Below, piece after piece: positions 38,027 to 41,538 of a stretch of DNA of 64,000 bases. The translations under genes were made by a program, and so were the position numbers. The stretch lies in sequence record NC_019407.1; one strand, given 5' to 3'. The notes beneath the pieces were generated by a model. It was not told the DNA's origin and did no database searches. It worked only from the letters and a program-made list of their open reading frames with translations. Each line of letters begins with the position of its first letter. Position 1 is the stretch's first letter.

Positions 38027-38690
38027 GGGGCTACGGGCCGTCCTCCTGCGTTAGCCCCGCCGCCGCGCCTTCCAGGCGGCGAAGGTCGGGACGGAGCCGA
38101 AGGCGAGCCGGCCGAGGCAGCGGTTGGTGAGCAAAAGGAGAACCCGGCGAGCGGCGGAAGGCGAGTTCCTCGCCCTCGAACTCGGAAAGCACGTGGTGAT
38201 GCCGGAACCACCGCGCTCGCGCGGACGTCTGGACGTTGCTAGGCGTAAGGCTGGCCTGCCGAGAAATGGAAACGGCCGGGGCGGACGGGACTTGATCTCG
38301 TCCGCCTTTCCGCCTAAGCTTCCCTCATTGCAGGCGCAGCACCGCCCCTTGCTAACGGCCCCGAGGGGTACGCGGGGGCTATGAAGCCTTGCCTGGGCAG
38401 GACTGCCACTGAACCAGGAACGCCCTGGGCCGCGTATCGCCCATGACGCGAACGCCGGCCGAGAACAGGCGACTAGGCGTGACGGCGACCAGAGGTCGCA
38501 CGATATTCCAAGCTCGGTAGAGCGATCGGCGGGCCGGGGCGCGAGCCTCGTTTCGAGAGCCAGGGCAACCCGTCATAGGTCCTGGTCGGGCGACGAGGCA
38601 GCAAGTCCTGCGAACGGAGCCTCTGAGGCGGCGTCACCAAGATGCAGCAGACGCAAAAAGGCCCCGATCTTGCGATCGGGGCCTTTTCAT
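38027..38690 (+). ncRNA. Candidate ~660-nt large structured ncRNA (unassigned)
   Basis: Own promoter and terminator, no credible ORF, many local stems plus a long-range GGCGGAA/TTCCGCC pairing. Confidence 0.65.
38655..38687. terminator. Bidirectional intrinsic terminator
   Basis: AAAAAGGCCCCGATC-TTGC-GATCGGGGCCTTTT. Confidence 0.92.
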
Positions 38691-38692
38691 GT

Positions 38693-38781
38693 TGGAGCTT
38701 CGGGAGGGACTCGAACCCTCATAGGTGTTCCCACCAGCAGAGATTTGCAATCCCGCGCCTAACCTCTCAGTCCACCGAAGC
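38693..38781 (-). tRNA. tRNA-Cys(GCA) with long variable arm
   Basis: GCTTCGG/CCGAAGC acceptor, U73, encoded CCA, loop TT-GCA-AA, T arm GAGGG-TTCGAGT-CCCTC, extra GGTG-GGAA-CACC stem. Confidence 0.9.
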
Positions 38782-38784
38782 ACA

Positions 38785-38965
38785 AAAGGACCTCGACGCC
38801 CGAAGGCCCGAGGTCCGATCCGTAACCAGGGGAGGGCCGTAGCTGTCCCCTGACCCTGAACGACAGGTGGCGGGCTTGGTCGTCATCCCGTCAGGCTCGC
38901 GGCGCCGCTCGCCTGAACCGCCGATATGCCACGAGGGCAGTGATCCGCAGGTCCCCATAAATAGC
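38785..38965 (-). ncRNA. Candidate ~180-nt structured RNA between the GOLLD-like terminator and tRNA-Cys
   Basis: Non-coding; CAGGC/GCCTG, GTGGC/GCCAC and CAGGGG/CCCCTG stems; ends in a U-tailed hairpin. Confidence 0.4.
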
Positions 38966-39000
38966 AAAAAGGCCACGATCCGCGAGGACCGTGGCCTTTT
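38966..39000. terminator. Intrinsic terminator
   Basis: AAAAAGGCCACG...CGTGGCCTTTT. Confidence 0.88.
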
Positions 39001-39004
39001 CGTT

Positions 39005-39878
39005 TTCCGATGGGCTGAGACTACACCCATCAGCAATCCCGCTTCGAGGATTATTCCCCAGGTGCGACCCCAGGTATTCCCTCGACGTCCACCAGACCCC
39101 TTGCGGTAGTCCAGTCCGAGATCATCGCCGCCGTTCTTGCGCACCCCGAAGGGATTGCGGGTCTGGCGTTTGACCCATCATGGCGAACTACTCGACAGTT
39201 CCTTCCCCGCTGGGCTTGCGACCCACTCACCGGCGCTAACCGGCTGACGAAGCTCTTCCTATCGACACCTCGCGGGCTTGCGACCCTTGAGATGACTCCG
39301 TTACCCGAAGGCCGGAGCATTTGGCGACTTACGTCCGCCACTGGACCAGTCTTTGCGTTTTTCATCGAAGCGGGGATTGAACCCGCGACCGACAGCTTAA
39401 GAGGCTGTTGCACTACCACTGTGCTATTCGCAAACCCACCAAGACGTGCTGGTCCAGTTGTTCCCAGAGCTTTTGACCCCAGAAATGCAACACGCCTCAT
39501 ATCTTTCGCCTTGCGGGCTACTCGACTGCTCTTCAGGACCCCGTCTCCCCCAACCTTTCGGCCAGGATGCCCAGCACCCCTCGAACTGAAGCAAAGCTCT
39601 TCACCGCGAAGTGTCGAACCCTGCAACCCAAACGGTTATCCGTACTCCCTAGACGCGCTTGCACGGGATAGTCCGCTTGCGACGGACTGGCGGTTAAAGC
39701 CTCGGAGTTACCCCGGCCCCGCCTTGTCTCCCACGGTCTTCAGGTCTATCCCCTTTTGCAAGAGGCGGCCAGCTTCCCAGCCCGGACCCGTCGGCTTCCT
39801 CTGTCCTCTTGCGAGGTCGGGCGGCCTATGGGAGACCGTCCCTGTCACCCCGTCGCCGGGGCTTTCGTCAGAAGCGAC
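39005..39878 (-). ncRNA. GOLLD-like giant structured RNA (~870 nt)
   Basis: Promoter and terminator bounded; at least 8 GNRA and 2 UUCG hairpins; GTCGAGTAG twice, one in a loop-E-like AGUA/GAA context; internal tRNA module; next to phage tRNAs. Family call is from recalled GOLLD features, not a search. Confidence 0.72.
39362..39433 (-). tRNA. tRNA-Lys(CTT)-like module embedded in the GOLLD-like RNA; degenerate acceptor stem, no CCA
   Basis: D arm GCAC/GTGC, ACAGC-CTCTTAA-GCTGT, GCGGG-TTCAATC-CCCGC; only about 4-5 acceptor pairs. Confidence 0.8.
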
Positions 39879-39884
39879 GATGAC

Positions 39885-39913
39885 GTTCTAGCGACAGCCC
39901 ACGTCGTCGTCAA
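39885..39913 (-). promoter_or_regulatory. Sigma73-type promoter of the GOLLD-like RNA
   Basis: TTGACG-15 nt-GCTAGAAC. Confidence 0.82.
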
Positions 39914-39969
39914 CGACTTTTTCCGTCTCGATGTCGAATTTTTTCGACAGTCGTGGATGACGACAGTGC

Positions 39970-39998
39970 TTGACATTCTCGTAAGCCCATGCTAGGTG
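39970..39998 (+). promoter_or_regulatory. Sigma73-type promoter of the tmRNA/tRNA unit (divergent)
   Basis: TTGACA-15 nt-GCTAGGT. Confidence 0.72.
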
Positions 39999-40003
39999 TC
40001 GGA

Positions 40004-40375
40004 AATCGTTGTAATTCGGACAACGGAACTGGCGGCAAGACAGGGGTGCGAATCCCCTCGCCTCCACCATCGACGCCCGGCGCTGGGAGTACGCGACTCC
40101 TGGGCAGGGTGCGTTACCCTGGCGGGCTGCGGCCCGAGCCAAGGGGTAGCCGGGCGTCGTTGATGGGGGCGACTAGCTTTCGATTGGCGCTCGGGACTGA
40201 AAGACGCAACGGTGGGTGACCTCCACATCGGCTTGCCGGTGATCGGGTCAGGCAACAGTAAATGTCGCCGACAATGACAACGACGTCGTGGCTTTCGCCT
40301 CGGCTCGTGAAGCCATCGCCGCCTAATAAGCGGTAGAGGAGCCCGCCGGGAGCTTGGCAACAGAATCCCGGCAAC
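40004..40375 (+). ncRNA. ssrA: Two-piece (circularly permuted) alphaproteobacterial-type tmRNA
   Basis: Acceptor piece ends GAC-AGGGG-TGCGAAT-CCCCT-CGCCTCC-A-CCA (40069). Intervening segment closed by CGACGCCCGGC/GCCGGGCGTCG. Coding piece starts GGGGGCG (40165), giving G3:U70. Tag 40267-40326 reads ADNDNDVVAFASAREAIAA with tandem TAA. Confidence 0.93.
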
Positions 40376-40507
40376 CCCCTTTCGCAGGCGGGAACACCAA
40401 CAGGCGATCTGTCGGGCGACCGATTTCCGATCCGTGTTCCCGTCTTCGAAAGGTGGTCGGGCCTACCCTCTTGGTGTGCTATCCAAGGGTCTGGCCACTT
40501 TACAGAA

Positions 40508-40586
40508 CGCGGGGTAGAGGAGTCCGGTTGTCCTCGTCTGGCTCATAACCAGGAGATCGTGGGTTCAAATCCCACTCCCGCTCCCA
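40508..40586 (+). tRNA. tRNA-Met(CAT), initiator-like
   Basis: CGCGGGG 5' end with C1:U72 mismatch, CT-CAT-AA loop, GTGGG-TTCAAAT-CCCAC, CCA encoded. Confidence 0.9.
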
Positions 40587-40588
40587 AT

Positions 40589-40985
40589 GCGAACGCCGGC
40601 TGTTGAGAACGACGGCGTGACAAGCTCGGAGAGAACGAGCACTCCAGTCCGGGGTATGAGGCCGGACTAGCGGACGCCGTAGCGATTGCAGGCGTGACAC
40701 CCGGAGATAGCGGGACCGGCTTTCCGAGCCGCATGCTCGGCGCGTAAGACCGCAGGCCTCGGCCATCGGGCTGTGTCAGGGGATGAGGCTAGTCCTCGGC
40801 TAACCACCTAGCGGTGAAGCTAGGGCATGCGGTTCGGAAAGCCGGTTCGCACCTTCCGCGCGGACCTCGACGAGAGGAAAAGCGCCAGGACCACGGTCCT
40901 GAGATTCGACGGCTGCATGCAGCCTCCTGATCTGACTACGGTTCGACGGGACGAGCGGTGAAAGCCCGTGTCGACCGACTGGTGG
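40589..40985 (+). ncRNA. Array of about 12 short hairpins between two tRNAs (candidate sRNA)
   Basis: ACGCC/GGCGT twice, GCTCG/CGAGC, AGTCCGG/CCGGACT, CCGAGC/GCTCGG, CCTAGC/GCTAGG, AGGACC/GGTCCT and others; no credible ORF. Confidence 0.5.
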
Positions 40986-40995
40986 GTGAGATTTT

Positions 40996-41080
40996 GGTAC
41001 GGTGGCTCGACAGGTAAGGCATCGGCCTCATAAGCCGAGGGTTCGTCCCAATCCTGGTTCAAATCCAGGTCGTACCTCCA
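40996..41080 (+). tRNA. tRNA with CAT anticodon (Met or Ile2) and long variable arm
   Basis: GGTACGG/TCGTACC acceptor, U73, CCA, TCGGC-CTCATAA-GCCGA, extra GGG-TTCGT-CCC arm, CCTGG-TTCAAAT-CCAGG. Confidence 0.88.
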
Positions 41081-41154
41081 AATCGACGCTTGACCCCAGG
41101 CCGCAGGCTGCTAAGCTTCCCCGGTCGGGATCGTCCCGCGTCCTTTCCAAGGTC

Positions 41155-41184
41155 AAGCCCCCGGAGCCTCGCTTCGGGGGCTTT
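41155..41184. terminator. Intrinsic terminator ending the tmRNA/tRNA unit
   Basis: AAGCCCC-CGGAGC...GCTTCG-GGGCTTTT. Confidence 0.8.
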
Positions 41185-41538
41185 TCAGTTCTTGACCACC
41201 CGCAGGCGCCGGGCCTCGCTGGCGCGCTCCTCCGCCGCCACGCGCGAGACGTCTTGCAGGTGCGCCTTGGCGATCAGGTCGGGTGCGCCCACGGCCCGGA
41301 AGGGCACCTTGACGGAGAGGTCGACATAGCGCCGCAAGAGCGGCTCGAATTCCAGACCCCGCGCCTGGGCGATCCGCGACAATGCGCCGGCGACGATCGC
41401 CACGACCAGGACGTTGGTCGGGGTCTCCTTGGTCAGGGTCCAGATGCCCGGTATCGATTGTCCAGGATGGAGTTCCTGCCGCGACACGTCATCGGCGGCG
41501 GCGCGGAAGAGGTTCTCGTAAGGGACGTTTTCGAGCAT
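41185..41538 (-). CDS. Hypothetical protein
   Basis: High GC3 from ATG 41538; the upstream part of the listed ORF is not gene-like. Confidence 0.65.
   Translation of the reverse strand: MLENVPYENLFRAAADDVSRQELHPGQSIPGIWTLTKETPTNVLVVAIVAGALSRIAQARGLEFEPLLRRYVDLSVKVPFRAVGAPDLIAKAHLQDVSRVAAEERASEARRLRVVKN

Follow-up and report, generated by a model that had tools for sequence, protein, structure and literature searches.

A tRNA-like module in the linker of the GOLLD RNA of Caulobacter phage CcrMagneto, a candidate tethered tRNA mimic

INTRODUCTION

The GOLLD RNA env-38 forms a 14-mer cage, solved by electron cryomicroscopy at 3.0 Å, with an unresolved linker directed into the lumen (Kretsch 2025, PMC12286853). 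In some GOLLDs, tRNAs have already been described within the J13/15 linker, and the authors of the cage structure noted covalently linked tRNAs (PMC12286853). A tRNA-Phe occurs in J13/15 of a Mycolicibacterium GOLLD, for which a 2026 review proposes "inhibited storage" (PMC12990946), and in Mycobacterium aubagnense an embedded "pseudo-tRNA" went undetected on Northern blots whereas GOLLD was detected (Behra 2019, PMC6582537). We describe here a tRNA-like module at positions 39361..39434, on the minus strand, of a 64,000-nucleotide stretch of the sequence record NC_019407.1 (the window, to which all positions refer unless stated otherwise). The module has the arms of a tRNA-Lys(CUU). It is integral to a GOLLD RNA, clamped by helices and located between a hairpin and the 3′ domain. 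Positions 38600-41200 of the window are 100% identical to JX100812 100600-103200, from Caulobacter phage CcrMagneto (Magneto below). Our search of the literature turned up no account of GOLLD in a Caulobacter phage.

Several other systems contain tRNA-shaped elements. The tRNA-like domain of transfer-messenger RNA (tmRNA) is likewise part of a larger functional RNA, and a permuted order occurs among the relatives of the Magneto module. The tmRNA keeps, however, the acceptor and T-arm half with CCA, is charged with alanine and has no anticodon arm; the GOLLD module is the reverse. tRNA mimicry in a long RNA is present as well in the plant viral 3′ tRNA-like structures and in the mascRNA of MALAT1, which occupy terminal positions and need the acceptor end (for aminoacylation or RNase P cleavage), whereas the GOLLD module is internal and without an acceptor end. 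YrlA, which occurs in phages and mobile elements as well, is a noncoding RNA with an embedded tRNA mimic; this mimic reproduces the acceptor, D and T arms without a normal anticodon stem–loop, and YrlA works with the Ro/Rsr protein. The GOLLD module is likewise embedded, and no link to Ro/Rsr is seen for it. The passage of PMC9569102 that cites Chen et al. 2014 gives bacterial Y RNAs (YrlA) a tRNA-like module. Free phage tRNAs counter defenses that target tRNAs, with the tRNA-Lys of T5 against PARIS (PMC11464382), with anticodon-loop variants (PMC10264068) and in retron evasion (PMC11555353). These resemble the module in their phage origin, in the prominence of tRNA-Lys and in an evolving anticodon loop. 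They are complete and chargeable and replace cleaved host tRNAs, whereas the module, tethered and without the acceptor end, could be at most a decoy or a sensor.

RESULTS

The module lies in the linker of a GOLLD RNA

The match to the Rfam model of GOLLD (RF02032) runs on the minus strand from 39498 to 39012 and spans the full model (positions 1-416 of 416), with 169.4 bits against a gathering score of 150 and an E value of 8e-46. The tRNA-like module occupies the variable stretch of the model, from the first hairpin to the conserved AAAGCAAAAGUCU motif (here AAAAACGCAAAGACU). Besides the score, the flanking helices with their covariation and the phage setting beside tRNA genes place this RNA in the family. 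In the window, ARAGORN finds a tRNA-Cys, two tRNA-Met and a tmRNA at most 2 kilobases (kb) from the module, and the GOLLD relatives sit within arrays of up to 32 tRNAs. Magneto shares with the known GOLLDs that have linker tRNAs the family (Rfam), the location of the tRNA, flanked by the hairpin and the 3′ domain, and the phage setting near tRNA genes. Such a placement of the tRNA is a known feature of the family, and the locus is therefore not a new kind of element. A first-pass annotation, made from the letters of the window, had described a tRNA body built into a giant structured RNA and closed by a long-range helix; that description holds, and the giant RNA is GOLLD. GenBank annotates the module as an ordinary tRNA-Lys, and the genome paper for the phiCbK-like phages states that Rfam gave no RNA elements except tRNAs.

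A complete cloverleaf body with a truncated acceptor

ARAGORN calls a tRNA-Lys(CUU) at 39434..39361 (minus strand). The Rfam tRNA model gives 56.1 bits, the best score in the window and above the three other tRNAs, yet only model positions 4-67 are matched. The D arm (GCAC/GUGC, 39424-39410), the anticodon arm (ACAGC/GCUGU with the loop CUCUUAA, 39408-39392) and the T arm (GCGGG-UUCAAUC-CCCGC, 39386-39370) are perfect, and the variable loop is CGGUC. The anticodon loop lies at 39397..39403, with the anticodon CUU at 39401-39399. In the acceptor, four Watson–Crick pairs form (CGAA 39430-39427 with UUCG 39369-39366), followed by G.A, U.U and U.G at positions 3-70, 2-71 and 1-72. The 3′ side is without CCA and continues as AUGAAAAAC. 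Direct reading, ARAGORN and Rfam agree here with the first-pass annotation, which had noted on these letters perfect D, anticodon and T arms, an acceptor of about 4-5 pairs and no CCA. The module has the cloverleaf and the tertiary core of a functional tRNA gene and lacks the seven-base-pair acceptor stem and the 3′ CCA. With its acceptor truncated and internal, and CCA absent, it does not qualify as a mimic of the acceptor end either.

The 27 other tRNA genes of Magneto (24 in the 47-51 kb cluster, plus the Cys and the two Met genes in the window) all have complementary seven-position acceptor ends and encode CCA; among the 28, only the module departs from this. A stand-alone tRNA-Lys(CUU) and a stand-alone tRNA-Gly(UCC) are present elsewhere in the Magneto genome. 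The stand-alone tRNA-Lys(CUU) has 87 nucleotides (L392:36850-36936) and the stand-alone tRNA-Lys(UUU) has 90 (L392:36942-37031), both within JX100812 48850-49031. The two carry long, class-II-like variable arms, unusual for tRNA-Lys. In Mesorhizobium phage Cp1R7A-A1, tRNA-Lys (two copies) and tRNA-Asn are similarly long, with 88 nucleotides. Lys and Asn are the commonest identities among the GOLLD linker modules as well.

The tRNA body is kept among GOLLD relatives

To be independent of linker content, the scan of viral, genome and metagenome collections used as its probe the conserved motif immediately 3′ of the linker. About 120 GOLLD loci remained after filtering, 28 of them recovered by nhmmer, and their linkers comprise about 77 distinct sequences. 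Among the comparator loci sampled, 13 of 14 pass the Rfam threshold for GOLLD; L069 falls below it and is to be treated as a partial or uncertain GOLLD. Of the distinct linkers, about 71 contain a tRNA-like cloverleaf in the standard order, five contain a circularly permuted one and one lineage (L149/L161) contains none. GOLLD with a module is found also in the other Shapirovirus phages, in Mesorhizobium phage Cp1R7A-A1 and in Sinorhizobium phage Phosso. In Rogue and BL10 (Poindextervirus relatives), GOLLD is absent and only about 290 nucleotides separate the tRNA-Cys from the tmRNA.

Alignment A1, of 33 distinct sequences, served to test the structure. Pairing over the combined structure is 96.8%, against 32-46% in slid controls, and the covariation (0.504, against 0.154 in shuffles) is equaled in none of 500 shuffles. 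The D, anticodon and T arms reach 99-100% pairing, and across lineages they show dozens of compensatory double changes. In the acceptor, only the pairs 4-69 to 7-66 are supported. In the 64 modules that could be parsed, the tertiary core comprises U8 (62 modules), A14 (63), the D-loop GG (64) and a UUCRA T loop (63). The Levitt pair is A15–U48 in 42 modules and G15–C48 in nine, and the 13-22-46 contact is formed by C13–G22 with G46 in 47 and by U13–G22 with A46 in nine; both the 15-48 and the 13-22-46 contacts covary. Because the arms covary and the tertiary core is kept, the module is a selected, L-shaped tRNA body and not a relic. A module absent or freely decaying in the relatives is not what the survey shows: the cloverleaf is kept by compensatory changes.

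The number of consecutive acceptor pairs is four in 20 modules, five in 17, six in 13 and seven in eight. Seven pairs together with NCCA occur in three of the 64 modules only (L270, L277 and L303). The cloverleaf and the tertiary core are kept by selection, and the full acceptor end is not. At L303:1347-1451 (minus strand) and in L340, the linker contains a complete tRNA with the anticodon UUA (which reads the UAA stop), a seven-base-pair acceptor and GCCA.

The anticodon loop varies on a conserved body

One module body occurs with 18 different anticodons, including the non-natural A34 forms AUU, AGU and ACC. Other modules among the relatives have 8-nucleotide loops, and a "Leu(CAG)" lacks the long variable arm. 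In the seven-base loops (n = 58), U33 is present in 56, A38 in 55, A37 in 46 and U36 in 49. The two exceptions to U33 are phiCbK and BL57 (G33 or A33, with U37). Magneto has the canonical loop (seven nucleotides, U33, purine at 37), and the orthologous slot of phiCbK and BL57 deviates from it. The first-pass annotation had proposed comparing the anticodons of this module across relatives. In that comparison, the Lys/Asn-like NUU anticodons are prominent (36 of the 58 seven-base loops), but the range extends to the 18 anticodons mentioned and the loop differs even within the genus. At all four loci with at least 25 neighboring tRNAs captured and a natural anticodon in the module, that anticodon is found also in a stand-alone gene.

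In the phiCbK-like phages, the loop is CUCUUAA in Magneto and RBC57, CGUCCUA in phiCbK and Ccr10 and CAUCCUA in BL57, with the remaining GOLLD nearly identical. Over the whole GOLLD, Magneto and phiCbK differ at seven positions: 39552, 39309 and the five adjacent loop positions 39402-39398. None of 2,000,000 random placements of seven differences is as tight. No compensating change occurs anywhere else in the RNA, and the loop therefore does not pair with GOLLD itself. A partner of the anticodon loop inside GOLLD, either intramolecular or through homo-oligomeric kissing, was accordingly rejected on the comparison of Magneto, phiCbK and BL57. For a decoy of an anticodon nuclease, a loop matching the target is expected to be conserved among phages of the same host; three loops are present in phiCbK-like phages of the same host strains. 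Since phiCbK has CGUCCUA and BL57 has CAUCCUA, with G33 or A33, conservation of a Lys-specific decoy fails even within the genus.

Eighteen independent close pairs of loci were compared, 14 of which share the module body. Loop differences in these 14 pairs amount to 7 of 98 sites (7.1%), against 10 of 1062 (0.9%) in the body and 85 of 5547 (1.5%) in the scaffold (Fisher test, 2e-4 against the body and 1e-3 against the scaffold). On a scaffold tree of 60 tips, at least 36 anticodon changes are required, against 40-44 in the five shuffles listed. Judged from these comparisons, the anticodon loop appears unusually labile. In four of the 18 close pairs, the whole module is exchanged on a near-identical scaffold (L285/L352, with 2/396 differences in the scaffold and 27/77 in the module, L130/L013, L295/L354 and L334/L085), which suggests that the module is swapped as a cassette between the conserved flanking motifs.

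Helices and motifs that clamp the module

The complementary 9-mers CTGGACCAG (39341-39349) and CTGGTCCAG (39449-39457), in which the first-pass annotation saw a closing helix, are both present. In the RNA they form a closing pseudoknot helix, with the 5′ strand CUGGACCAG (39449..39457) located within the 3′-side internal loop of the hairpin and the 3′ strand CUGGUCCAG at 39341..39349; both strands are assigned by covariation. In the 33 distinct relatives, the helix is 99% paired and three inner pairs have changed on both sides (A1 columns 50-58 / 167-175). Covariation backs only the inner six pairs (GACCAG/CUGGUC). The outer CUG/CAG is invariant, and Rfam puts that CAG, the last three bases of the 3′ strand, in a different long-range helix. 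The nested model of Rfam leaves the 5′ strand (39449..39457) unpaired. The closing helix is real, with the covarying pairs in its inner part.

The base helix of the hairpin is formed by GAGGCGUG (39491..39498, from the Rfam alignment) with CACGUCUU (39448..39441, from the Rfam alignment and covariation); it is 99.6% paired, with four covarying pairs, and its numbering as P13 is our own assignment. The 3′ strand includes GUCUU (39445-39441), which pairs upstream with GAGGC at the base of the Rfam hairpin. The helix GTCTT/AAGAC proposed earlier is complementary in Magneto, but only 54% paired in the relatives and without covariation. It finds no support in the comparison, and GUCUU belongs to the hairpin base helix.

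On the 5′ side of the module, the linker motif GGUGGGU (39434..39440, GGUAGGU in most relatives) is nearly invariant in A1. Its last U is the first base of the ARAGORN call. The motif is scaffold and not tRNA, because it is present also in GOLLDs with a tRNA-free or permuted linker. On the 3′ side, the motif AAAAACGCAAAGA (39350..39362), invariant in A1, aligns to the Rfam consensus AAAGCAAAAGUCU and contains CGCAAA (39357-39352). This CGCAAA can pair with TTTGCG (39434-39429), as proposed in the first-pass annotation. The complementarity exists in Magneto and appears in the minimum-energy fold of a 171-nucleotide context. It is invariant inside a GC-rich clade (alphaproteobacterial phages plus the metagenome-assembled loci L220 and L270) and absent elsewhere; across the subfamily the pairing reaches 54%, with no covariation. 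The pairing and the four-base-pair acceptor are mutually exclusive. The 96- and 171-nucleotide contexts fold differently, with the cloverleaf in one and UUUGCG/CGCAAA in the other, and folding cannot choose between them because the z-scores are only -0.1 and -1.2. An acceptor strand swapped into the scaffold, which gave the earlier reading its title, is thus possible in Magneto, but it is unproven and without comparative support.

Permuted modules

The five permuted modules are at L103:4752-4874 (+), L143:7600-7724 (+), L315:5670-5808 (-), L323:2363-2489 (+) and L361:2696-2818 (+). Their order is T arm, 3′ strand of the acceptor, ACCA (ACUA in L315), a loop of 6-23 nucleotides, 5′ strand of the acceptor, D arm and anticodon arm. 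The seven-base-pair acceptors covary. These modules are attached to the scaffold via the variable loop instead of the acceptor end. Because the permuted modules join through the variable loop, what is common to all linker modules is the elbow with the anticodon arm, and not the acceptor end.

Permuted tmRNA genes have a layout matching that of these modules, and 3 kb from its module L103 has a gene for an alpha-type tmRNA. In Magneto, a two-piece (circularly permuted) tmRNA gene is present at 39977-40417 (plus strand), with the tag peptide VADNDNDVVAFASAREAIAA (ARAGORN). The Rfam model tmRNA_permuted gives 70.3 bits at 40007-40326, and the gene is unannotated in JX100812. A permuted tmRNA gene is present also in phiCbK, Ccr10, BL57, RBC57, Rogue and BL10.

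The predicted transcript and its neighbors

A GOLLD RNA of about 915 nucleotides (38965..39880, minus strand) is predicted, because a promoter-like site, a terminator and the onset of conservation near 39880 in the phiCbK-like phages delimit, together with the Rfam match, a single unit; its two ends remain predictions. The predicted order is 5′ domain, P13 hairpin, J13/15 linker with the tRNA-like module, 3′ domain and terminator. The promoter-like site TTGACGA-N14-GCTAGAAC (39885..39913, minus strand), a candidate read from the letters, fits TTGACGS-N10-14-GCTANAWC, which we take to be the Caulobacter sigma-73 consensus. A scan for sigma-70 promoters gave no match. The 5′ domain (39499..39880) is nearly invariant in Magneto, phiCbK, Ccr10 and RBC57 and varies with lineage: by blastn it cannot be aligned to the GOLLDs of the Mesorhizobium and Sinorhizobium phages. 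This agrees with the published description of GOLLD, in which the 5′ region is less conserved (PMC12286853). The rest of the conserved 3′ domain is at 39012..39340 (Rfam model positions ~150-416), and an intrinsic terminator hairpin with its U-run ends the RNA at 38965..39002 (a 17-pair stem, then TTTTTG, in the terminator scan), both on the minus strand. In BL57, the gene BL57_146c (L004:1719-1925, minus strand), called a "hypothetical protein", overlaps the 5′ domain of GOLLD and is probably spurious.

Beyond the terminator of GOLLD, terminator-like hairpins occur at 38788-38809 and at about 38650-38690 (both minus strand), just upstream and just downstream of the tRNA-Cys. Since these hairpins flank tRNA-Cys and GOLLD has its own terminator, the sequence suggests that GOLLD and tRNA-Cys are separate transcription units. 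The tRNA-Cys(GCA) itself (38693-38781, minus strand) is over-long, with 89 nucleotides, and reaches only 33.8 bits in the Rfam tRNA model. One of the tRNA-Met (40996-41080, plus strand) is over-long as well, with 85 nucleotides. In the tRNA cluster of Magneto, ARAGORN finds a tRNA-Ile(AAU) with CCA (L392:38950-39024, plus strand) that is absent from the GenBank annotation.

DISCUSSION

We favor, with moderate confidence, a reading in which the GOLLD cage displays the module in its interior as a tRNA mimic, tethered and non-chargeable, that interacts through its anticodon loop. Two helices, the hairpin base helix and the covarying pseudoknot helix, clamp the base of the module. As the module presumably cannot be aminoacylated, and its release by RNase P and 3′ trimming is unlikely, it would stay covalently tethered. 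By homology with the solved 14-mer of env-38, the only GOLLD known to form one, where the linker faces the lumen, fourteen tRNA bodies would hang inside the RNA cage. The anticodon loop would then meet an outside partner that reads the anticodon arms of tRNAs (candidates are a tRNA-targeting nuclease, an anticodon-binding enzyme or the ribosome), and the module may act as bait, decoy or handle. The fast change of the anticodon loop is consistent with an interaction surface under changing selection. A decoy for anticodon nucleases is one possible role of the loop, and the idea fits current work on tRNA-targeting defenses and phage tRNAs. Between the two options left by the first-pass annotation, the displayed tRNA mimic is the better one; a processed tRNA source is disfavored, the module being the sole CCA-less gene of a phage that has a stand-alone tRNA-Lys(CUU).

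Several points weigh against the tethered mimic. For CcrMagneto, we infer the tethering, the formation of the cage and any partner alike. The linkers of L270, L277 and L303 have a full acceptor with CCA, so that real tRNAs may be released from some GOLLD linkers; five or six acceptor pairs can form in many AT-rich relatives, which might still be processed. The strong bias toward Lys and Asn could come from ancestry instead of function. The anticodon of the module is found as a stand-alone tRNA in 16 of 41 loci and is not found in the other 25, with several of the arrays partly sampled. The excess of loop changes in the close pairs rests on three changed pairs among the 14 and, counted by events, is only suggestive (~0.02-0.07 in our own Poisson estimate).

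The module could alternatively be a purely architectural strut: a stiff, L-shaped spacer, without an outside partner and with an unconstrained loop, that fixes the linker geometry inside the cage. The conservation of the arms and tertiary core beside a free loop sequence is what a strut would give, one GOLLD lineage (L149/L161) manages without a module, and the Poindextervirus relatives are without any GOLLD. A strut has no need, however, for a seven-nucleotide loop with U33 in 56, A37 in 46 and A38 in 55 of the 58; the loop changes are multi-base replacements, faster than in the surrounding sequence, and the swaps of whole modules in 4 of 18 close pairs resemble selection for change and not indifference. 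We consider a strut unlikely. That GOLLD stores a genuine tRNA-Lys(CUU) precursor, which host RNase P and 3′ processing would release and which would then receive CCA, be charged and decode AAG, is in our judgment a rather poor prospect. ARAGORN and Rfam both call a tRNA, the anticodon loop is canonical with U33 and A37, and AAG would be expected to dominate the Lys codons in a genome of 65% GC; some related linkers contain complete tRNAs with CCA, and storage has been proposed for the embedded tRNA-Phe (PMC12990946). The 1-72, 2-71 and 3-70 positions of the module are, however, U.G, U.U and G.A, CCA is missing where every other tRNA gene of the phage has it, and the module would duplicate the stand-alone tRNA-Lys(CUU). 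The slot in phiCbK and BL57 has G33 or A33 with U37, found in no decoding tRNA, the same body occurs with 18 anticodons, some of them non-natural, and in mycobacteria no free RNA was detected for the embedded pseudo-tRNA. For the Magneto module decoding is unlikely; it is possible for some relatives with full acceptors.

The permuted modules bring in processing of another kind, in which cuts at the module would split GOLLD into 5′ and 3′ pieces held together by the clamp helices, as in a two-piece tmRNA. All five have a covarying seven-base-pair acceptor, and four have ACCA and a loop in the layout of a permuted tmRNA; both Magneto and L103 have a permuted tmRNA beside GOLLD, and the solved structure has separate 5′ and 3′ domains. 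The Magneto module, like those of most relatives, is without the full acceptor helix and CCA used in such processing, and this makes the proposal improbable. A conformational switch, with UUUGCG alternating between the four-base-pair acceptor and CGCAAA and so opening or closing the tRNA shape, has even less to recommend it. The complementarity is present in all members seen of the GC-rich clade (the Magneto group, the Mesorhizobium phage with five base pairs, Phosso, L220 and L270) and is used in the minimum-energy fold of the 171-nucleotide context. On the other hand, it is 54% paired across the subfamily with no covariation, CGCAAA belongs to the scaffold and is conserved in GOLLDs at large, and the folding energies do not differ from those of shuffled sequence (z of -0.1 and -1.2). 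In L270, the region corresponding to UUUGCG (UGCGAAG) is the 5′ strand of a seven-position, G.U-rich acceptor, and the match may be a chance inheritance. Finally, the eroded acceptor stem and the absence of CCA would suit a decaying relic of a captured tRNA gene with no present function. With arms 99-100% paired through dozens of compensatory double changes, tertiary contacts kept and the highest tRNA model score of the window, this is barely credible, and the relic was rejected on the covariation of the arms in the 33 relatives.

A short conserved acceptor, a fast anticodon loop, cassette swaps and permuted modules are features for which we found no description, although Weinberg 2009 or Morgado 2020 might contain one. 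No paper on a phiCbK infection transcriptome was found in the literature searched. The annotation of four genes is corrected: neither the "tRNA-Lys" of Magneto, Karma and Swift nor the "tRNA-Gly" of phiCbK is an ordinary tRNA gene, and these four annotated tRNAs had entered codon-usage arguments. The comparison also narrows the partner of the tethered mimic, as the elbow and the anticodon arm are conserved, the acceptor is dispensable, the loop is labile and permuted versions exist.

The function of GOLLD has been unassigned since 2009, despite the solved structure of the cage. GOLLD and its linker tRNA module are now placed in the phiCbK-like phages of Caulobacter crescentus, a genetically tractable phage–host pair. 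Natural variants are at hand, with three versions of the anticodon loop on near-identical RNAs and sister genera (Rogue, BL10) without GOLLD; with these variants and the tractable host, what the linker tRNA and GOLLD itself do can therefore be tested directly. As a bolder and doubtful extension of the tethered mimic, GOLLD cages might be programmable tRNA-bait compartments, with fourteen anticodon arms tethered in the lumen and a fast-changing, cassette-swappable loop that sets which tRNA-reading factor is captured or neutralized. If true, this would be the first function assigned to GOLLD, that of an RNA-only device for counter-defense or sequestration during infection, directed for example at a tRNA-targeting defense nuclease or an anticodon-binding enzyme.

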